From NCBI GenBank assembly GCA_000708835.1, contig DF237731.1, forward strand, positions 1 to 33,436: DNA of 33,436 nucleotides, in the 5' to 3' direction. Below are positions 2,172 through 33,436 of the stretch, piece by piece; position 1 is the stretch's first letter, and every line of letters starts with the position of its first letter. The translations under genes and the position numbers were made by a program. Source of the DNA: Klebsormidium nitens (Eukaryota > Plantae > Klebsormidiophyceae). The notes beneath the pieces are model-generated. The model had not been told where the DNA came from, searched no databases, and saw only the letters and a program-made list of their open reading frames with translations.

Positions 2172-7390
<5,219 letters not shown>

Positions 7391-10556: not shown

Positions 10557-11614
10557 CTCTCCAGTCCTCGTATGCCCGTTTCCAGAACCAGTGCATCATC
10601 GATAGAACGGCATAAACAATTAGCGTGTCCGGCTATGCGTATACCGTAAAAAGCAAGCTGGGCCGGGCTTCGCCCGGCGGTCACAAAGCCTGAATTTCTG
10701 GCATGCAAGGCGGCCCCCCGCCCTCCCTCATGAGTTGGCCAGATGAAGCTGCAAGCCCTGGCCCCTGGCCTTCGAGGGCCGGGGTGCCACTCAAGCTAGG
10801 CAAAGTAATTGAACCCTAGATCCTAAGATCAAAGCTGATTTGGGCAGCGCATGTGAGTATTCAACATACATGATCCAACATATTGCCGGCCATGCCCTGG
10901 CCGCGGGCCAACTTGGCAATACTGATTCACTTCAAGATCCACTAGAATGCACAGAACATGTATCACTACCATGCAGGCCGCCGGTTCAGCATGATTCAGT
11001 TGGGTCATAAAGTCACGCGTATCCTATGAGGCATCTGGCTCGAGAATCTTTGATTGCTCAGCCGGCAAGCGTACAAGCAGGCTTGCCCGTCTACTACAGA
11101 AGCATATACATGTTAGTTCTTCCATGAAAGCTAGGACGCTACATCTACCCTCATGGGCTTGAGGATGTGACGGTATATAAGGCCGGAAAGTCTTGTGCAT
11201 GTGGGAAATTTTATGATTGGCACGAGATGGTACACTAGTGACGCCAGGTCGAACTCGAATTGACATCCACACCAGCGCATTTTGCAGGATGATTTGAAGC
11301 CACGGACTGACATCAATCGTATCATCGACGAGCCAGAAAAGAATGTAATGCACTCAATGATGCAAAGATGCTAAAACCCCTCGCAATTAGTGAGATCAAT
11401 GCATAAGAACTTCAGCACATGGATTTCAATGACAAGCTGCAGATTGGACCAGGCTCGACGCACCGGTCGCATTCTGACGATTGTTTCCCATCGACCCACG
11501 CGTCATGCCCACGAACTACCAGATGGCATGGACGTGAGGATTTGGCCTTGACAATATGCGCTTGCACTTGTATGCACAGTATGGTACACAACGATCCCGA
11601 AGCATAAGGCAGCA

Positions 11615-14600
11615 TCACACTGTTCGGAACAGTTCGCGCATCTCCGGGGAGGAGGGGCTGAGCTGTTCGCTGGGGTAGCACTGCGCGAGCAGCGCCTCCA
11701 GGTCCTCGTACTGCGCCAGGAACTCCTCCTTGGCCTTGTCCCAGAGGCTGGGCAGCAGGTCGTCCGCGGTCAGGTGCTTGGCCATGCGCTTGTACATGCC
11801 GCCCAGCTGCTTCTCCACCTGCACACCACACGCACCACCGCCTCAGGCCCCTGGCACGGCGCACACACCGCACGCGACCGCCGCAGCGCACGCCACGCCC
11901 CAGCGGGGCAGCACGAGACCAAAGGCAGGGCGGGGGCGCAGCTCACCCCGGCGAGCGTGCTCTTGAGCAGCTTGCGCAGGTCCGCCTTGCTGAAGCCGGG
12001 CGAGAAGGGCACCTGCAGCAGCGGCGGGGGAGCAGCGCGCGTCAGCTGACGGACAGCGGAATTGGGGCAGGGCGGAGCGAGGGGCGAGCACGGCCAACCT
12101 GCGGCGGGCATGGCCACAAGACACCCCGGGTGATCTTTGAGAGGGACTCCGGTCGGGGCAGCCAGCGGTCTCTGATACCCGGTCAACGAAAGAGCACAAA
12201 AGCGTCGCGGCAAGCCGGGCAAGACGTTGGAGGCCTTGACAACCGATCCCAAGGAAGAAGTCCAGTCCTGATTGGTTGATAAGGGCGAAGCAGTCTTGGT
12301 GGGATAAGGGGCGCCAGCCGGCTACTGCCTTTGTTGCAGGAAAGAGGGGGGGCTGTCATTGCGCCCCCCCGCCAGGCTGGTACCTCTGCGCGTCCGCCTC
12401 AATAGTCGGGCAGCGCTGGCCGCTCGGTGGGGCGCAGTGCGGCAGGAGACGAGGGGGGGGGCTCACCTCCTCGGGGCGGACGTCGAGGGCCTTGATGCGC
12501 TCGCCGAACTGGAACAGCTTCCCGAATTGCTGCACCACCCACCCGCCCGGGCATCAGCTGCCGCGCAGGGAACACCGCACGCAGCACGCAGCAGACATCA
12601 CACAGAGCAGCGGCAGAGAGCAGGGCCGTGACGAAGAGCGGGGCTGGGGGGGGTGGCCCTCACGTAGGCGATGGCCGCGTGGACGTAGTCGGCGCAGGCC
12701 TGCTCGTAGGCGTCGCTGGCCTGCTGGTAGAAGACGGCGAGGGCGGGCACGCTGTTGGCGAGGTCGAAGGTGCTGTTCTGGAACGCGGCGTAGTTCTCGA
12801 GCAGCAGGATCGGCGCGTGCTTGGGGTCCGCGGCGGCGATGCGGTGCAGCACGGCGAACATGGTGCCCACCAGCCGCTCGTACGCGCCGTCCACCGCGTC
12901 GCGCGCGCCGCCCTGCACCAGCTGCTCCATGCGACCCGCCAGCAGCGCAAAGCGCGGGATGTACGGCAGCACGCCCGCCTGCTTCAGCCCCTTATCGTAC
13001 CGCTCGATCTGGTGCGTCACCTCCTCGATGAACTGCGCGCACGGGCAGAGAGGCGCGCGTGGGGAGCAGGACGCAGACGGGACATCCGAGCCTGGTCATC
13101 CTTGATGCATTGGTGGCATTGGGTGCATCTCCGTCTTGCAATCGCTTTTGCCCTCTGGCCACACCATGGATGCCAGCCGCAGCAGGTCGACGCCGGCCGG
13201 AGGGGCGCACTTTTCCCCGGCTGATCCGGTGTGGGGCGCGCACCTTGGCCCAGCTGGCCCGGATCCTGTCGGCGCAGTCGGCGAGGAGCTGCGCGATGGC
13301 GGGGCTGCCGTGGTCGGCGGTGCCATGGGAGGCGAGCCAGGCCTCGGTGATGCCGTCCAGCGTGATGGCCTGCACCGCGTCCAGCCGGCACGCCCAGTCC
13401 ACCAGCCCCACGAAGTCCTCCGACAGCCCCGCCACCAGTGCGCCCTGCCCCGCCGCCAGCGCCGCCTGCTCCGCCACGCCGCGCGCCACCACCACTGCAC
13501 GCACCACGCCCACCGCACGCGCGTAAGCGGGCCAGGCAGAGTGCGACCAGGGGGCAGAGCAGGGCAAGGGGGCGGCCACACAGGCGCCGGCCCTGCCGCC
13601 TGCTGGCTTGATCAAGCCATAGGGGTGGGAGGGGGGGTAAGCCCTCACCAGTCTTGCCATCAGGGGCGGCAGGCGCGTCGGTCTCGTCGTCGGAGAGGTC
13701 GATGTTGAGGGAGTCACTGCGCGTGCGGCTGGGCGCTTCCACGTCGAAGCACATGAAGCCCGCAAAGAAATTGCTCTGCCACACCCGGCCACAGCGCGGC
13801 CGTTAGGCGGTGCCGATGCGGGGGGAGGATGCGAGCAGACATGGGGCCGGCAGCACAGGAGGCATGCGTAAGCAAGGACGGGAGCAGGTCAAGTGGCGTG
13901 CACCATGCCCGGATGCCAACGCGATGCCACCACCCAAGCCCGCATGGCGAGTGAGAGCACCCCGGGAAGGCAGAGACTGGAGGGTGGCTAGCGCCCGGGC
14001 CCTGCACACGCACCTCGTCGACGATGAGCGGCACGAACGTGCGCAGCATAGTAGTGTAGGCCTCCCCTGCGGGCGAAAGCGCGGGCCCCCCCGTGCCGTT
14101 GGCGGCCCCCGCCAGGTTCTCCAGCCACGAGTTGGTCGTGCGCACCAGCTTGCTGCTGGCGCGCAGCTCCTCCGCAAACGCGCGCGCCTGCACATGCCGC
14201 CCGTGCGCCGCGCCTCAGGCCACGCCAAGCAGGGGCACCCCAGGCCAGAGGACAGCGGCACAGGAGGGAGGGAAGCCACATGGACGGCGCACGGAAGAGG
14301 GGAGCGGGCGGGGCTCACCTCGCGTCGCAGGAGGCTATTCAGGGAGTGACAGTAGGCCTGGCGCAGGGGCGGCAGGCACGCGGGGTCCAGCTCCTGCACC
14401 ACGCACCAGCCACGGCCGCCAGTCAGCCCAGCAAGCAGCACCGCAGCAGGGGGCGGCCCCTGGCGCGTCAGGCAAGCAAAAGCGAGAGCCGACGCAGGGC
14501 TTGCTGACAGGGCAAGCCGCGAGGGGGCGGCGCCGGCACAGAGCAGGGGGCGCAACAGCGGCGGCGGACCTTGAGGTGCTGCAGCAGGGGCGCGTAGGCG

Positions 14601-17818: not shown

Positions 17819-19951
17819 ATGACTAGTCCTCTTCAGACGGTGACGCCAAGCTCGTCTGACAGCGACGCTTCGGTCCTGTCTGTTGGAAAGGTGGTTGGGG
17901 GTGAGGGGTGGAAGCAGAGCGCGGGGAGAGGCCGGGCCGGGTCTGGGCTAACAGCCAGCAAGGAGCGCGCAGGGCGGCCTCTTGAAGTGCTTGCGCCGGA
18001 GCTACGCGAGCAATACGAGGATACAGGGGCGGTGCTGGGCAAGGGTACGTACGGGGTGATCCGCCTGCTTAAGGACAAGCGGAGCGGCACGCATGTGGCG
18101 GCACGGTTCATTCCACTGCGGCTGTGGTCGCGGCAGAATGAGAAGGAGATCATTCTCATGGCGCAGCTGCAGCACCCGTGCATGGTGCGCTTCCAGAAGG
18201 CCGTCCTGACAAGTGCGGATCTAGTGGTCATCACCGAGGCCTATGGGATGGGGAACACGCTGATGCGCTTTGTGGACAAGAAGATGCTGACAGAGTCACA
18301 GGCAAGGTAAGGCGTGTGCTGGTTCAGGCCCTCGGCCAGATTTGTGAAATGGTGCACCTTTTTACCAGGTTTGGTTGGTTCTGCTATGACTTAGTTTTTG
18401 TTGCGCCAGATCTTGGTTGTGGCCCATGTCCTCTTGCGCCCTCCAGCCTGTGTGAGCTTGTATTGCTGGTGGGGTAGGGTATGGAAACTGGTAACCTTTA
18501 AGCGGCAGACTTTGATGCTGTACAAAGGGAACTGTTTTGGGACGGACGGTTCGTTGAAAAGCAAGTGGAGTCCTGCAGCTGGGGTAAGAAAGAGGGACTA
18601 ATGACACTGTCGTGCCAAAGAGTTTTAGATGGGTGCACAAGAGCAGACCCAGCCTCGGGCTATGTCGGATGCTGACTGTAGAGCAGTCGCGTGTGTGCCC
18701 AGCGCCGCCCCGCGCAGCTCTGACGCGGGTGCCTCGTGGGGGGCTGTCAGGTGGCGGGTCTCTTGGAAGCCCCTCTTCCTGAGCGGCCTGTCGGCTGCAC
18801 ATGCCAACAGTATAACCCTGTGTGGAACACCGTGAGCAGAAGCATATTTGCCTGGAGCCAAGAGCCTCCCCTTTGCCATGCGGAGCTCTGCAGGGGCTCA
18901 GGTGTCTTGGCGGTACAACTTACCCCAGATCTGTCCGATGGCCTTTCCACCACCTGCTGCTTACTGGTTCCCATGGGAGTTGTAATGTGTTTGTTGCCAT
19001 TCCCCGGCAGAAACTTGGGGGAGTGTTGCTGGCGCGCGTGGGTGTTGTATGGGTCCGCCCTCTCTGTGGCGCTCCTGGTGGGCATGCACCAGGGACGCCA
19101 CAGAGGGAAGGCCATCACCGCATTGTGGCCCTCTTCCGGCATTGGGTTTCTGCCCGTCGTCAGGTGTCAGGAGATCAGGTGGCGAATTGAGCACGTATAC
19201 TTGGGACATGTGTTCACGTCCTTTTCAGCAGCCGCGTAACAGCGGGTCCCCTTCCTCCCCCTGGCCTGGGCGCTCACGGGCGCGCGGCTGTGCGCTGGAT
19301 TGCAGGTACCTGTTCCAGCAGCTGGTGGCGGCCACGGAGCTGTGCCACGAGGTGGGGGCCAGCGGGCGGGACCTCAACATGGAGACGGTCATCCTGGGCA
19401 AGGCCAACCCGCCGGGCCTCAAGATGCTGCCCCTGGGGAACACGCGCACGGCGCTCATGCGCGGCTCGGAGCAGGCCGTGCTGCCCAGCAGCATCTACGC
19501 AGCGCCGGAGATCTTGCAAACGCGGGGGCCGGGTGCGGAGGGGGCGGTGGAGCAGCACGACCGAGCGGAGTTGGCCAATGGGAAACAAGCGGACGTGTGG
19601 TCGCTGGGGGTAATCCTTGCAGCGCTGGTCTTTCACACATACCCCTTCGCAGACAAAGGCCCCGAGAAGAACGTGCAGCGCATGTTCGAGCGCATCACGG
19701 CGGGAGAATATCAAATCCCAGCCAACGTGCAAGTGGATGATAGTTTAAGGGATCTCTTAGATAGAATATTCCAAATCGACCCCAACAAGCGGATCACGTT
19801 GCAGCAAATTAAGGAGCACGAGTGGGTGAAGGTAAACATGCCACCGAAGCTGCGGAGAAGGTATCAGCCAGTACTCGCAGAAGGTGTGCAGAGCTTTACG
19901 GATGTTTTGATGGTGCTGAAAAGTGCGAGGGCTGCGTCAAACAATTCTTGA
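17819..19951 (+). CDS. SnRK2-derived protein kinase-like protein, predicted pseudokinase, 2 exons, 377 aa
   Basis: Exon 1 is 17819-18306 (donor AG|GTAAGG) and exon 2 is 19306-19951 (acceptor TTGCAG|G); phase-2 junction, intact frame. It aligns by eye to SnRK2 throughout: GKGTYGV, KEIILM..LQHPCMVRF, ARYLFQQLV, YAAPE, ADVWSLGV, YPF, DLLDRIFQIDPNKRITLQQIKEHEWVKVNMP and SnRK2-box-like QSFTDVLMVLKSA. Catalytic motifs are degenerate (VAAR, GRDLNMET, PLG). Confidence 0.88.
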
Positions 19952-21402: not shown

Positions 21403-22626
21403 TGAGACCGGCCTTAATTTGAGCTTGGATCGCGTGGTTGCTTTACCGGATTGGCCAGGAGTTTGCAGATAATTGTCCGACCGGGAGCGCTTCCGACGCG
21501 AGCCTCTACAAAAGCGGAGCCTGCTCTAGTTTATGCATGTACAGCAGGGCTCGTTTGTGTATCTGACGGCTTTTTGGGATCAAAGTACGTGCAATATCAC
21601 TACTTACGTCCATGTTGTTCCCTTCGATTTTACATGCACATGCAAACTCTGACGATGCTCGAAGTGACTTTGAAGTTTGACGCCAAATTCGATCCGAGAG
21701 TGGCCATGTCATGCATAAACCTTATGCTACCATTGACTTCTTTTGGTACGAAAATTTGGAAATAGCTATGACTTGCATGCTATATGCCAGGTATTGAGGG
21801 TTTGATGACTTTCAACGTTCAATTGCTTGCGCAAGCTGGGCCGGCATATATAGGATGAATTTGATCGAAACATCTTTTAGATGCCTTGTGCAAGAATCGA
21901 GCTGACGGGAGCCTGCTCTGGACGGTCCATCTATATAGACCATCCAATTGAGCGGCACCCAATATTTTGGGGCAAACTGATGATATGTACATAATCGACT
22001 TCACATCAAGTCTGATCCGTGAACGGTTAAGGCGGGTATCTTGGTGCAGCTCATCCGATCAATACTTCTGACCAGTCTGATTCAACATTTGTCGATCATG
22101 GCGGATAGGTGCTAACGACAAACAGGTCAAGCAGAAGAGTCAGTTCTTGAGCTGTAGATCTCAATAGGTCAGAGGTTACCATCTCCCCTTCTCACAGGCA
22201 AACGAGCATATCACAAAAGCTACACAAGTCCATGAATCATAAGCCAAAGAGTTAGAAATGATGATCTCAGCTAGCTTCTGACGCTTACCGTTTGGTACAA
22301 CATGTCGTAATGGCCCCATGTCCAATCACAATCCATTCTCAATGGTCCCGCCATGCGTCAAAGTCTCGGTACAGCAAGATGGCAGGACTACTTGTTCAAA
22401 GAATTTTAAAAGCTTTTAAAGAAGTTAACTCTAGGTATGAGAAAAGTGAGCTATACCACAAAGTGTCAAGGGGCCCTTGACTCGAATGAGTTATCTCAAA
22501 GTTGGTCAATCCTGTATCCTATCTATATAGCATCCACTTGCTTGTTGCAGCAATAGCCGATTGCAGAACCGTATCGTGCTCTCCTCATGCACCCCTCTCA
22601 TAAATACATAAAGCTGCTCGCATTGG

Positions 22627-25600
22627 TTACTGGGCGACAAGAGGAGCGCCCTTGGAGCTTGGCCAAGCTGCTGGCGAGCTCTGCACATGATGCATCCCGT
22701 TGCTTGCTCCTTGCGACGGCTCCAAGCCAGCCCCCGTCGTGTCTGCCCCCGCGCCTGTCGTTGCCCCACTTTCCCCGGAATACGCTCCCCTCGTCTCCTC
22801 TCCACTCAGTACCTGATCCGCCCCGTCTCTTGCCCCCTCGTGAGGCGACACTGCTGCCAGGGCCTGCTCCGCGTGCGCTCCTGCAGCGCCACCATCGCCG
22901 ACACTGCCCGGCTGCACACCACGGAGCCAAAAGGGATCAGTCGCATTGCGAAGCTGGCCAACGCAGCGCTTGCGGCCAGCAGAGCCCGGAGGATGTGGAT
23001 CTTTCATCGCACTCGCGCTCTCTGCAGCCCGTCTGGTCGAGCTTCGGTCGGCGGCCGCTCGCTGCAGGGGAGCAGTAAGTAGAAGAAAGCCCTCTCGATT
23101 GCTTCCATTACGAGAGGAGCCCTGCCAGCACGTACACGGAGCGCATCAGAACGGCAGGAGGCGCCTGCCATACTCCGGCAGCGACTCCCAGCTCAGCGCA
23201 GCCTCCACGAGGGGGATGGCACGGCCTGGAGGCAGGGCGGTCCTGCGACCTCCAGTGCCTCAGCCACGATGCGACTCTGGTCATTGCCCCTCCTCGCGCT
23301 GCGGGCCTCACCTCCACCTTGGGCGTGCTGTCGAGGCGTCCGTTGGCGTGCGGGGTGGCGGGCGGCGGGGTGGCCAGGCTGGCCTCGGTGGGCACCGCCT
23401 TAGGGGTGCCCCTGTCGGCGGAGGGGCTGGGCTTGAGGCGCGGGGAGGGCGTGCTGGTGCGGAACTTGGGCAGCGACGACGCGGTGGGCTGCATGAAGCG
23501 CGGGGTGCCCATGGGGGACATGATGCTCTTGGGCGTGCCCGGCGACGCGGCCGCCACCTGGAGGGGGGCCACCCACGGGGAGAGGCTTAGCTCAGCGAGC
23601 AAGGCAGGCAAGGCAGCACCCGCTAGGAGAAGTGCAGCATTCAAGGGCTCACACGCAGTGCACGCGCAGGATGCCCGGCTGTGCATCTGGCCCCGGGCTC
23701 ACCTTGGGGGATGGCGGGAAGCTCAGGCGGCGCTCGGCGCGGGCCGCGGTGGGGGATGGCGTGGCTGCCTTCCTGCAGCAGCGGCAGCAGGACATGTGAG
23801 CAGAGCGGGAGGAAGAAGGGGGGGGGGTGGGGCGGGAGGCAGGCAAGGCGAAGGTGCGGGAGGCCAATCTGATCCCTCTCCCATGCAATCACCCCGGCTA
23901 GGCTGCCCGGACTTACCGAGGGATGGCCAGGGTTGCGGGCACACTGCGGGTCTTGCTGCTTGCCGCGGTGGGGGAGTCCGTCTGCGCGCCAGTCAGACAC
24001 AGCAATCAGCACCGTGCCTGGGCAAGTCACGCACTATCCAGGCATGCCCTCTTGGGACCTGAGTGCAGCAGGATCAAGGCAGCCGCGATTTCGGGGCAGA
24101 GGGAAGACAGCACTGGGCGTGTGTCCTTGTGGCCGGCAGTCCCTCGGCCCTGACCTTGGGGCCTGCAGCCACGTATGGATCCTTGTTGAGGCGCGTGGCG
24201 GTGGCAGTGTTGAGCTGGCACACCCCGCACAGCGGCCCCGCCTCGGTGTCCTTGACGCGGCTGGAGAGGCGGCCGCACCACTTGCACTGGCGCTGCTCGC
24301 TCGCGGCCTTCCCCAGGTTCGGCTCCTCCCAGTCCACCACCTTGGTCGGGAAGTCTGGCTCCTGCACACCAACCCCTCCCCGCACAGCTGCGTCAGAGCA
24401 AGCAAGCACGTCACACACACACATGCCCCGCCCATGAGACTGCCCCTTCAGCCCTGGCCCTTGTTGCAACCTTCTTGCACAGCAGGGCCGGGCAGCCCTT
24501 GCGAGCTGTCGTATGATGCTCCACCAGCAGGGCGCGACGGTGCCCCGCACTCTGGGGCCCCTCACCTGCTTGGGGACCTTGGTGCCGGTCTGGGCGTACG
24601 GATCCTTGTTGAGGCGCGTCGCAGTGGCGGTGTTGAGCTGGCACACCCCGCACAGCGGCCCCGCCTCCGTGTCCTTGACGCGGCTGGAGAGGCGGCCGCA
24701 CCACTTGCACTGGCGCTGCTCGCCAAAGTCGCGCTCCAGGTTCGGCTCCTCCCGCTCCACCACCTTGGCCGGGAAGGCACCGCCGTCCTGCACACAGGGC
24801 ATGCGCACTCGTTCGCGCAGCCAGGACCAGCGTGCAGCGCAACGGGGGACAGCTCAGCGCAGCACACCAGGGTGCAGGTAGCCCCTACGTCAGGGCAGAG
24901 ATTGACAGCAGGAAGAGGCCACGACTGGTATCGACGCATCCTTAAAGTGTGCTAGACGGCAGGGGCCAGGCAGGGGGCTTACAGACAGACGACGAGAAAG
25001 AGGCCCCCCCCCCTCGCTGTTGAACCTGATCACTCTGCGAGGTGGTGCCCAGTCCTGTACAAGCAAGAGCAAACCCTGAGTTTAAGAGAGAAGGCAAGCA
25101 TCAGGACATTGCAAAAGAACCGGCTCGCAACTGCTGCACTAACATAGAGGCAGCAGACACAGACACTTGCAATCCGGGGCAGGGGCTCTCAGGGGCACCA
25201 CAGGCGCAGCACACGGATGCACCTTGCGAGAGAGGTCGGAGGCGTCGATGAAGCTGCGGTTCCTCCAGGGGCGGGCCACCATCCAGCGCTCCAGCCAGCC
25301 CCAGCCCCACCCCTCGTGGTCGGGGTCGTTGGGGATGTACGTCACCGTCTGCACAGGCCAGCCCCCAACAGCGCAGCACATCAGGCCCCATGCGCGCCCT
25401 GGGCGAGAGCACACCCAATGAGACACAGGGCGATAGGAGCCGGCTGTGGGAGATGCTGCGGTAGGGAAGGCCGCACATAGAGATGATGCTGCCTCCCGGA
25501 GCCCCGGTGGCTCACCTTGGGCGCGGGCCCCGTCTTCCAGTTCTGGAAAGAGGCGGCATACGCGCGGGCCCTCTCCCGCTTGATGAAGCCGGTCTGGCGG

Positions 25601-27007
25601 CGGTGGTAGTCCGCCTCCAGCTCACTGATGGGGGCAGCGCTGCTCACCCAGCCCTGCACGCACCCGCCGCACAGCGCGGGTCAGAGGGGGGGGGGAGAGC
25701 GCCGGCCACTCACTGGTGCTTGCTAAACATGGCTTCAAACCCCTTGCGATGAGAATCTAGAACCTTAGTGCTGGATCTATGGCCGGTGTCCTCCATCAGG
25801 GGCCAGGCCACGCTTACATCTGTCCTCTTCTTCTCCGGCCCATCGGGCTCCCGGAACCCGCCGGCCTCAAGCCGCTGCTGCACCTCCCTGCCCGTAGCCG
25901 ACTTGCGCACGGCATTGGCACGCGCGCGGGCCTGCACGCGCACGAGCGCGTTCATGCAGCGGAGCGTGATGGCGGCCTGGCGGCGCACGATGTGGCCGCG
26001 CACCAGCGCCTGCACCTTGACCAGGCTCTTGTGCGTGCGCACCGAGCGCCGCACCTGCCACACACAATCACGCGCAGTGAGCCTCAAGGACGGGGAAGAG
26101 AAACAAATGTTGCAATGTGACAGCAAGGAGGCAGAAAGCGAGCAACGAAGTGGCGAGCCACAAATGCTTTATTCCTGCTTGACAGTCACTCACCAGATGG
26201 CCCCGGTATGCGGCTTGGATCTTGGTGGCAGCCCTGGCATCTCTGCTGGCCGCCCTGCTCTTGCTCCCGGCTAGCGCGCGCTGCGGGTCTGGCTTGGGGG
26301 GATTTAGCACCACATTCAGTTTGTCCAGGCCAGAAAGGGGTACCCGCTTCGCCTCCCCTGACTTGTAGCCCACTGTGCTGCCATTTGCTTTTGCCACATC
26401 CCCACGCTGCAAAACGAGCCAGGAAGGAGTGAATGCCATACAAAAAATCCTGGTGTCAGGTTCATAGCGAAGAAGCAATCAGAAGAATGAACCTGGAAGG
26501 GACAAGAGCACTGTGGCCAGGACTCCAGCTTTTCTGAAAGCAAGTAAGAAAAGATGGAGAATCCTTTTAGGCAAGCAGGCACCGGACTTGTGGGTGAGGC
26601 TTTGAGATACGAAGCGGGTGGTATGCCATCTGTCGCCAAATAGGTTCATCAGAGATTTAGCTTGTTGCGATATCTGTGTTGCAGGAGGTGCACAGGCTCA
26701 CCAGTGCGGCAACCCCTGCGACAGGGGTGCCCCCCACTGCAGGATCTGCCGAGGAGCCGTCCTTGGCCTTTTTCTGCATAGAGCCAGACGTCAGGTATCA
26801 TTGCACACTAGGCCAGGCCCTCTGGTTGCGTGCAGAACATGACACTGCAAATGTACAAAAGCCTTTGACAAACATAGTTCAGGACTAGTCAAGCACAATT
26901 TGAGTACAACAAAGGAACAATGTCCAGGCATTGCAATCAACCAGATCCACCAGGAGTGCCATGCTGCTCACACTGAAAATCCTTGTCAGCGTTTTCTTCA
27001 TGCCCAT
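22627..27007 (-). CDS. IQD: IQ67-domain (IQD) calmodulin-binding protein with two tandem C4 zinc-finger-like modules, 13 coding exons, about 712 aa
   Basis: Exons (minus strand): 27007-26972, 26773-26702, 26406-26194, 26054-25818, 25653-25516, 25348-25223, 25054-24983, 24787-24566, 24361-24155, 23981-23917, 23772-23703, 23557-23312, 23061-22627. IQ67 domain [13 protein letters not shown]|[46 protein letters not shown] is split by the family-typical phase-0 intron. Other IQD motifs: [34 protein letters not shown]4005-like [15 protein letters not shown], basic N-terminus [14 protein letters not shown]. 11 of 12 coding introns are phase 0. The last exon is the least certain. Confidence 0.9.
24173..24721 (-). 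repeat. Duplicated 126-nt coding module (24596-24721 and 24173-24298) inside two paralogous IQD exons
   Basis: Direct repeat with a 423-bp offset. Both copies encode [42 protein letters not shown]; the 5 nucleotide differences are all at synonymous third positions. Confidence 0.97.
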
Positions 27008-27041
27008 TGCGCTGGAGAGTGCAATGACCAGCTAGGAACAC

Positions 27042-27369
27042 CTGCAGAGCGCGAAGGTCATGTTGTGACACAATGGCACACCACCACACCTCAGAGCGAG
27101 AGAAGAAGCATTTTAAGGGCTTTGTTGGATAGTCTAATAAAGCAGAATTGCTTCAGCTTTGCTCTGTCATTACCAATGCCAGGAACATGGGCACACAAAC
27201 ATCCTTTCCAGGTGCTGCTAAGCTTAGTCTAGCAGACCCTGACGGCATCTAACTGCGCTCCGGAAACAGGAAACTCACAAGGCTCTCTGTCGCACTCTAG
27301 AAGCATGAAACCGCCTCGCTGCTTTATTCCACACCCCACACGTCCTGTTGTCAAAGTTTTTCAACTTAC
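27042..27369 (-). other. Probable 5'UTR intron of the IQD gene
   Basis: Strong donor GTAAGT at 27369 and acceptor CTCTGCAG ending at 27042, which leaves 34 nt of UTR before the ATG at 27007. No transcript evidence. Confidence 0.55.
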
Positions 27370-27976
27370 TTTTAGAGAATGCCCCAGCTAGCACTGTCCT
27401 TAAAACCTCTCGCGCTTTACTTTGGCTAGAAGTTAGAACCTGCGTACAACTTGGCGCTTTTGAGATGGCCACCTTCCAATTTTCCTGCTATCGTAGCTAC
27501 CCCGAGCTAAAAACGTGCCCTGGAATTTCTGCGACTCGTGGCGGAGCTCCTTCTTTTGCTGATCTGCAGATCAGATCTCAGAGTCACAGTGGCACTGGAA
27601 CTTTGCCACTGCGGCGGTAGCCCCACTACAGGCTACAGCGTACCGTGCTGTCGGCGTAGGTACCTACGTCTGGTCTCAGCACGGCTGACCGAGTACGAGT
27701 ATTTCTGGCGGTTTGACACAGCCCAATCTTTTGTCCCCCAATGGACAATGTGTGTCAAACAAACCTTCGGAAACGCCGACGCCACATCGATCAAACCAAA
27801 AGACCATCGACCGAAAAACTCCCGAGTGCCACTGATTTTAGGGTTTCTCTAGTCCTACGGTAGGTAGCGCTAGGGTTGCAGAGGTTGCACTTGCAGCTAC
27901 GGTAGGTTGACCGTTTACAGGTCCCATGGCATTGCTTGTCGCTTCGTAGGTTCTGTAGGAACAAATCTGAGGTTGC
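27370..27976. promoter_or_regulatory. Divergent promoter region shared by IQD and UTP5
   Basis: Head-to-head arrangement. Contains a telo-box, two GGTAGGT motifs and a 14-bp palindrome. Confidence 0.65.
27836..27846. promoter_or_regulatory. Telo-box (TTTTAGGGTTT, reverse complement contains AAACCCTA) upstream of UTP5
   Basis: Exact AAACCCTA on the minus strand 130 nt before the UTP5 ATG. Telo-boxes are established elements of plant translation and ribosome-biogenesis genes. Confidence 0.6.
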
Positions 27977-33304: not shown

Positions 33305-33436
33305 TTTTCAAGGGTTTTAGGGTTTTAGGGTTTTAGAGTTTTAGGGTTTTAGGGTTTTTTGGGTTTTAGGGTTTTTGGGTTTTTGGGTTTTTAGGGTTTT
33401 AGGGTTTTAGGGTTTAAGGGTTTTAGGGTTTTAGGG
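33305..33436 (+). repeat. Telomeric repeat array, TTTTAGGG type, running to the window end
   Basis: After a degenerate first unit TTTTCAAGGG there are 15 units: 9 exact TTTTAGGG plus TTTTAGAG, TTTTTTGGG, TTTTTGGG (x2), TTTTTAGGG and TTTAAGGG. The G-rich strand points toward the end, as expected for a right chromosome end. Confidence 0.95.

Follow-up and report, generated by a model that had tools for sequence, protein, structure and literature searches.

Tandem C4 modules predicted to form treble-clef zinc fingers in the single IQD protein of Klebsormidium nitens and their homologs at the N termini of Helentron transposases

IQD proteins are calmodulin-binding, microtubule-linked scaffolds that are treated as disordered outside the IQ67 and DUF4005 regions, and a phase-0 intron within IQ67, after codon 16, is a hallmark of the family. 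Algal IQDs are largely single-copy and have a different motif makeup in Klebsormidiophyceae than in Phragmoplastophyta, with a single gene in Klebsormidium nitens; zinc and cysteine are both unmentioned in a 2026 review of the family (PMC13443282). Helitron-type transposable elements capture host fragments, and within these elements DUF6570 marks the HLE2 group and an endonuclease marks the Helentron subgroup (PMC11417382). Here, the single IQD gene of K. nitens was analyzed on contig DF237731.1, all 33,436 nucleotides (nt) of which are referred to below as the window. Two consecutive exons of this gene encode tandem copies of a compact C4 module, and the clear homologs of this module outside IQDs are N-terminal fingers of Helentron (HLE2) transposase proteins. 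The best overall explanation, held with modest confidence, is that the single Klebsormidium IQD carries selectively maintained tandem C4 treble-clef fingers that were exchanged with Helentrons.

The module-encoding exons lie on the minus strand. In the DNA they show up as a direct repeat of 202 nt, whose copies (24152-24353 and 24575-24776) are spaced 423 nt apart, 88% identical and in one frame. Finger exon 1 (exon 9; 24566..24787; 74 amino acids) is supported by RNA joints, reading frames and a predicted core with an AlphaFold confidence score (pLDDT) of 82-92, and finger exon 2 (exon 10; 24155..24361; 69 amino acids) by RNA joints, reading frames, the repeat and an ortholog. Both are phase 0/0 and are separated by a GT..AG intron (24362..24565). 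Each encodes FP.KVV..EEPNL followed by a 42-residue CxxC-x15-CxxC module that opens with EQRQ-CKWC before the x15 spacer. The Cys codons are at 24709-24707, 24700-24698, 24652-24650 and 24643-24641 in the first exon, and at 24286-24284, 24277-24275, 24229-24227 and 24220-24218 in the second. In the public K. nitens protein (P0014; 662 amino acids), the modules occupy residues 321-362 and 394-435, exactly as proposed in the initial annotation of this locus, with Cys at 325/328/344/347 and 398/401/417/420. The two exons are tandem duplicates of each other.

Expression was assessed with Logan contigs from four public runs (four studies, two organism labels) aligned on positions 21900-27800. The same 13 splice joints were recovered in all four runs, and every joint reads CT..AC, that is, GT..AG on the minus strand; these include joint 24360>24565, across the intron between the finger exons. 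In each of the runs, contigs cross the junction that joins exon 10 to exon 9 as well as the outer junction on either side, and both copies are therefore present in one mature RNA, as had been anticipated from the reading frames. No exon-skipping joint was reported among the RNA contigs from the four runs, although contigs can hide rare isoforms. Separately, unspliced contigs of low depth cover two introns, at 24361-24586 and 22884-23341 (depth 2.9 and 7-10, compared with 40-250 for spliced contigs), and represent either retained introns or DNA traces in the RNA runs.

A 21-kb Joint Genome Institute (JGI) metagenome contig (L002) carries a syntenic IQD ortholog in which the IQ exons, both finger exons and a downstream kinase gene are collinear with those of K. 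nitens. Exons are 76-91% identical between the two, while the introns no longer align (blastn gave no match outside exons); neither finger exon has changed in length, their AG/GT borders are intact and none of the eight Cys is lost, so that conservation of these residues among orthologs, a point on which the initial annotation depended, is borne out. A third lineage is represented by an ortholog fragment that is 97% identical (P0002). Within the 42-codon core, the two K. nitens copies differ by five synonymous and no nonsynonymous substitutions, and orthologs have a ratio of nonsynonymous to synonymous differences per site (pN/pS) of 0.11-0.16 (Fisher p 3e-4 to 8e-4). The finger core is under strong purifying selection; for the whole finger exon, the corresponding substitution-rate ratio (dN/dS) between orthologs is 0.24-0.35. 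Copy-specific residues common to both species (VVEREEPNL for the first copy, VVDWEEPNL for the second, and the VPKQ tail) place the exon duplication before their split. Synonymous divergence (dS) is lower between paralogs within a species (0.19-0.26) than between orthologs (0.34-0.35), which suggests some gene conversion in the core. At third codon positions, the finger exons have a G+C content (GC3) of 0.91-0.95, the same as in the best-conserved exons of the IQD gene.

The module is not specific to IQDs. A phmmer search with exon 9 against 1.84e9 (1.84 billion) representative sequences returned 13 proteins, 11 of which are true relatives of the finger: two are ortholog fragments (P0001 and P0002), and the others (P0003, P0005 and P0007-P0013) have the finger in another setting. 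The two remaining matches, a 1864-residue repetitive protein (P0004) and a saposin repeat protein (P0006), were rejected as false positives. The clear homologs outside the IQD family are N-terminal fingers of Helentron (HLE2) transposase proteins, with E-values from 2.3e-16 (P0003) to 7e-5. In the alignment of the finger family (A1), C11, C14, R16, S18, R20, V21, L29 and C33 are invariant and C30 is nearly so, and the IQD fingers conform to the family pattern C..CGR.S.RVK.T..G.LC..C along the whole finger. In P0003, the finger, two repeats of ~60 residues and DUF6570 are encoded in one open reading frame (ORF), and Pfam detects DUF6570 in P0003, P0134 and P0137 at E 1e-11 to 1e-14. The ORF encoding the P0013 finger is found in two contigs (L003, 10001-16437, and L004, 237-6673), where ORFs for DUF6570, Helitron_like_N/REP, PIF1 and Exo_endo_phos come after it on the same strand. 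The co-occurrence of DUF6570 and the endonuclease in these ORFs supports the Helentron (HLE2) assignment. Residence in an element with DUF6570, Rep (HUH), PIF1 and AP endonuclease thus holds for the relatives; the IQD copies are instead part of an ordinary host gene. No transposon sequence was detected around the finger exons, blastn of four contigs (L001 and L003-L005) against the window matching just 72-87 nt of the finger core.

The closest Helentron relative of the IQD fingers is P0003, which agrees with the L002 copy at 29 of 29 residues across EQRTC..CQL. In the finger core, the IQD copies share 88-94% of residues with P0003; identity falls to 50-72% when the other Helentron fingers are compared with these sequences or among themselves. 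Synonymous change between P0003 and the IQD copies has in effect reached saturation (proportion of differing synonymous sites, pS, 0.75-0.85), which, given the complete match of those 29 residues, implies that the exchange is old and that both sides have been constrained since. GC3 of the Helentron ORFs is 0.45-0.51 throughout, in contrast to the 0.91-0.95 of the IQD finger exons. Finger-bearing Helentrons are known here from P0003-type proteins and contigs L003 and L004, from Klebsormidium-type algae. A search with a profile of the Helentron N terminus recovered 17 proteins, several of which lack a finger at the exact place, one (P0136) having a remnant, KCGRC; profile scans of metagenome contigs with alignments A1 and A2 yielded no confirmed locus.

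The N-terminal part of these Helentron proteins (P0003, P0013, P0134 and P0147, and those of contigs L003 and L004) is modular and runs from an optional domain through EDVPIAQL repeats, a C4 finger that some members lack and two ~60-residue repeats to DUF6570. The optional domain, also of ~60 residues, has the pattern SVTPAWLE..GP.ELV..G.DG...KG.V..WDGP..GYTVRLL. The paired repeats have the pattern ECPASIF.GV.PFW.G..YR....YG.Y.DEN.AALARDYA.RRI, and the Pfam AP2 model gave no match to them at E<=10. Automatic naming by JGI has labeled two finger-bearing Helentron ORFs, P0008 as "transcription elongation factor Elf1" and P0149 as "ribosomal protein L37E"; these names reflect look-alike zinc knuckles and are not true assignments.

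The treble clef consists of an N-terminal zinc knuckle, a beta-hairpin and a helix whose N terminus supplies the last two ligands. AlphaFold, run with the 14-sequence alignment A1, predicts an arrangement of this kind, with strands at residues 9-10, 17-18, 22-24 and 27-29, a helix at 31-45 and Cys at 11, 14, 30 and 33 (pLDDT 90-92 for residues 11-30 and 82 for 31-40), and a single-sequence model agrees with it. The predicted CxxC knuckle, hairpin and helix opened by the second CxxC would place the finger in the treble-clef class, with zinc probably bound through the four Cys. Structural neighbors are nearly all zinc-binding domains, mostly treble-clef, and include AtGATA18 (1.8 A over 35 residues), GATA1, AreA, FYVE, LIM, RING, B-box, nuclear receptors and the ClpX zinc-binding domain (ZBD); their scores (Z 2-3 or E>0.07) are low, as expected for ~35 residues, and are uninformative for family assignment. 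Foldseek returned nothing at E<=1e-3 against the PDB with either model and a wide VIA-align structure search returned nothing at Z>=5. In Pfam searches of the exons, P0014 and the 14 family members, no finger family reached its cutoff; the best subthreshold matches were PknG_rubred (0.0076-0.011), DUF7573 (4e-4, below the 30-bit cutoff) and zf-C4_ClpX (0.069, in one of the 14 members). Searches of PDB sequences with one exon and with the A1 profile gave no significant match, the best being FCGBP (0.059), ZNF483 (0.41), ClpX (0.72) and GATA-4 (1.5). On these comparisons, the module appears to represent an orphan zinc-finger family without a Pfam model.

Two more specific affinities had been suggested for the module. 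The TFIIB ribbon consists of two beta-hairpin zinc knuckles and a three-stranded sheet, with no ligand-bearing helix. A TFIIB/TFB-type zinc ribbon was rejected here, as the third and fourth Cys are predicted to close a strand and to fall within the opening turn of a 15-residue helix, the layout of a treble clef, and no Pfam ribbon match carried weight. Kinship with GATA fingers was also set aside: the spacer is x15 rather than x17-20, TPxWR and CNACG are both missing, none of the 14 members matches the Pfam GATA model at E<=10 and no PDB sequence match is significant, so that the general fold class alone is shared.

Judged from its homologs, P0014 is a genuine IQD, as initially annotated. This protein is public under the name "IQ calmodulin-binding motif domain containing protein," and its sequence matches exactly the model assembled exon by exon for a coding region at 22627..27007 on the minus strand (13 coding exons, 662 amino acids), established from spliced contigs and the frame of each exon; the transcript extends over ~22319-27581 and includes one 5' noncoding exon. 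Its closest relatives (E ~1e-43) are IQ-DOMAIN/DUF4005 proteins from mosses, ferns, angiosperms and streptophyte algae. The IQ67 domain (residues ~92-158; 25902..26241, minus strand) is matched by Pfam IQ in two stretches (E 4e-8), and the IQD alignment A3 has ~40 invariant columns over residues 100-166. RNA joints and frames locate a phase-0 intron (26055-26193) at the exon 4/5 border, splitting IQ67 between YRGHL and VRRS, and the Closterium IQD has the same intron border, between YRGYL and ARKAL. Exon 7 (25223..25348, minus strand) encodes the IQD-typical GWxWLERWM..PWENR motif, with invariant W/G/L/E/R/W/M..R/P/W columns in A3. Exon 13 (23312..23557, minus strand) encodes a DUF4005-like core, for which BLASTP against the DUF4005 core of Physcomitrium IQD18 gave 44% identity over 32 residues (E 0.026, a single comparison), the motif P.[FY]M..T.S...K.R being aligned. 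The Pfam DUF4005 model (PF13178) did not match P0014 at E<=1, as is the case for many members of the IQD family, and the DUF4005 assignment is put forward at the level of the motif, as DUF4005-like. The modules sit where the initial annotation had them, in the linker between the IQ67 core and this DUF4005-like motif, and the linker around them is otherwise poorly conserved and disordered in A3.

Across the exons of the gene, GC3 is bimodal: those for IQ67, GWGWLERW, both fingers and the DUF4005-like core have values of 0.91-0.98, and the disordered exons 3, 4, 8 and 14 have values of 0.58-0.68. Downstream of the IQD gene, a kinase-like gene (19301-19949), which had been labeled separately as a SnRK2-derived pseudokinase in the initial annotation, is syntenic with L002 positions 11150-11801 (78% nucleotide identity over 652 nt). 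The end of the window (33311-33436) consists of (AGGGTTTT) x15.5, a telomere-like repeat of the TTTTAGGG type with the G-rich strand running 5' to 3' up to the last base of the scaffold, which places the IQD gene ~6 kb from a probable chromosome end.

The compact C4 module was found in none of the 119 best IQD homologs, whose other CxxC motifs amount to two N-terminal, unrelated occurrences (P0016 and P0034). A looser arrangement is present in zygnematophycean IQDs: in three Closterium species, one EukProt alga (P0075) and Spirogloea, a position collinear with the finger reads ..VELVD.GKCKSCGRR.., the site letters being FEAQLVESKPHRTVELVDMGKCKSCGRRVLVK in the three Closterium proteins, QRCKSCGRRIRAR in the EukProt alga and VDVGKCKSCNRRIR in Spirogloea. 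In Closterium and P0075, CNIC.PT.SW.AK follows 36-39 residues past CKSCGRR, whereas Spirogloea is without the second pair. A pairwise comparison over the stretch preceding the finger and the knuckle, to FEAQLVESKPHR..CKSCGR, gave E 0.015. The occurrence of CKSCGRR...CNIC at the same place in these proteins suggests that the finger may not be a Klebsormidium invention, and hints that it could be an old feature of algal IQDs. For the compact C4 form, the initial proposal of an undescribed architecture is supported within the literature searched, where no paper combined IQD, Klebsormidium and zinc finger, although an earlier notice of the motif is possible; the looser zygnematophycean arrangement is a qualification. 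What is new is the homology of the finger to Helentron N-terminal fingers, the protein having been public with an IQ annotation only. As a side observation, the annotated IQD product of Closterium sp. Yama58-4 (L006, 3001-7185; 720 amino acids) has a 130-residue tail that is coded ~1.5 kb downstream (6793-7182), past the DUF4005-like motif; the other two Closterium proteins have no such tail, which may be an annotation fusion.

The presence of the same domain family in an IQD and in Helentron N termini indicates that host gene and transposon exchanged it. Transfer from host to transposon is given about an even chance. A CKxCGR...CxxC site would have been ancestral in streptophyte-algal IQDs, would have been lost in land plants and, in the Klebsormidium lineage, would have become compact and been exon-duplicated, and it would have been copied into an ancestral Helentron. 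Several Helentron family members without a finger, and the one remnant in P0136, were counted for this direction. Synonymous sites and GC3 have fully equilibrated on both sides and so give no signal of direction. A number of observations weigh against this scenario. The homology of the Klebsormidium finger to the zygnematophycean site, on which it draws, lacks secure statistical backing: when the four IQD finger exons are used as a profile, the proteins with the site rank 2-5 of 121 at E 0.85-1.4, CxxCG[RK] is a common knuckle consensus for which L37e and ClpX give look-alike matches, and the Spirogloea site has the first Cys pair only. In Closterium, the region lies within one long exon that has no borders in common with Klebsormidium, which makes a comparison of exon borders uninformative. 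On the Helentron side, a tree built from the downstream repeats, itself weakly supported, splits the finger-bearing proteins into two clades, and their fingers have diverged to the same extent as the remainder of the protein (about 50-70%). The particular closeness of the IQD copies to a single lineage, P0003, would fit a later donation without the need for unequal rates.

These last points favor the opposite direction, in which a finger fragment of a P0003-type Helentron inserted into the IQD gene of a Klebsormidium ancestor, became a symmetric phase-0 exon and, after tandem duplication, was maintained by selection; in that case the zygnematophycean CKSCGRR..CNIC site would be unrelated. Divided at its midpoint, the Helentron tree has finger-bearing elements in either half, with the finger at the same position in the protein, which suggests that it is old there, and the IQD fingers match P0003 far better than they match all other Helentron fingers, to which their core identity is 59-72%. 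The lack of the compact module in the 119 best IQD homologs, the symmetric phase-0 exons, which are typical of inserted or shuffled exons, and the nonsignificance of the zygnematophycean similarity on sequence statistics alone all count in favor of this direction. However, a CKxCGR knuckle and a collinear F.A..VE... stretch are found at the same place of the IQD in an anciently split lineage, the exon segment that precedes the finger is without a counterpart in Helentron proteins, several Helentron relatives have no finger, and Helitron-type elements are known to capture host fragments (PMC11417382). Donation by the transposon is regarded as the main rival but rather unlikely, host-to-transposon transfer being preferred; the remaining probability goes to some other direction or to one that is undecidable.

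Within an otherwise disordered scaffold, the finger would provide a folded docking surface, and two tandem copies in a flexible linker would raise avidity. The conserved basic hairpin (G-R-x-S-S-R-V-K-D-T, with R16, S18, R20, V21, K22 and T24) suggests a specific binding surface, and so does the location of the transposase finger directly upstream of putative DNA-binding repeats. The ligand may, tentatively, be nucleic acid or chromatin, in keeping with those repeats, which is favored over a protein partner, itself a somewhat weaker possibility. A more speculative proposal, considered doubtful, is that the finger is an ancient docking domain of algal IQDs that was lost by land plants and copied by a Helentron as an "address label" for reaching the cellular target of the IQD; retention of all 29 core residues despite full synonymous turnover would then reflect use of the finger by the transposase for that same target.

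An alternative to docking by a ligand-binding finger is that the four Cys sense redox state or metal, or dimerize the IQD as an intermolecular "zinc hook." Spirogloea keeps the first CxxC alone, so that metal binding there would need two chains; the ClpX ZBD, a weak look-alike, is a dimerization domain, and the tandem copies could form a pseudo-dimer. Nevertheless, in the AlphaFold model the four Cys of a module come together within one chain, in a fold predicted with confidence, and the conserved non-Cys residues of the hairpin point to a specific surface, making a sensor or hook improbable. Least credible of all is a neutral passenger, a duplicated and exonised fragment in frame by chance and with no role in the IQD, which would suit the poor conservation and disorder of the surrounding linker but is opposed by the purely synonymous differences between the paralogous cores, the low pN/pS of the orthologs (p<1e-3), the retention of all Cys and both splice-site pairs in a relative with unalignable introns, the inclusion of both exons in contigs of four studies, and GC3 as high as in the core IQD exons.

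The specificity of IQDs, as disordered scaffolds, is ascribed to short linear motifs. A folded, predicted metal-binding domain in the single IQD of an early-branching streptophyte alga offers a handle on what the ancestral scaffold was tethered to, be it DNA or chromatin, RNA or a protein partner. The link between IQD and Helentron cleanly illustrates how a domain can pass between a host gene and a rolling-circle transposon, with constraint on either side. Should the zygnematophycean site prove truly homologous, it would follow that land plants shed an IQD domain as the family expanded.

Compared with land-plant IQDs of the Physcomitrium IQD18 and Arabidopsis IQD1/5 type, the K. nitens protein has the same IQ67 with its intron, GWxWLERWM..PWENR motif, MG.KK start and DUF4005-like motif, whereas no Cys-pair module occurs in that set, in which the median is three Cys per protein and none has the C4 pattern. 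The zygnematophycean site belongs to the same family and shares the position after PWENR, the CKxCGR knuckle and the collinear upstream stretch, but has 36-39 Ala/Gly-rich residues between the Cys pairs in place of 15, is single-copy and has no exon of its own. Among described zinc domains, the GATA finger shares the fold class and the order of elements, and its G-x-x-L-C-N-A-C loosely resembles G-P-L-C-x-x-C; the sequence match to GATA-4 in the PDB is nonetheless just E 1.5, with structural Z of 2.1-2.6. The N-terminal ZBD of ClpX is the best described look-alike in the PDB profile search (C-x-[FW]-C-G-[KR]-x-x-S-x-V-K..G, a nonsignificant E 0.72) and recurs among Foldseek neighbors; it is a bacterial dimerization and adaptor-docking domain with a longer spacer, the match is below every threshold, and homology is not claimed. 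Helentron HLE2 proteins have a single finger, followed by two ~60-residue repeats and the transposase, and the IQD shares nothing else with the element; in the finger itself, the two are homologous, with common Cys spacing and the same R/S/R/V/K/T hairpin.

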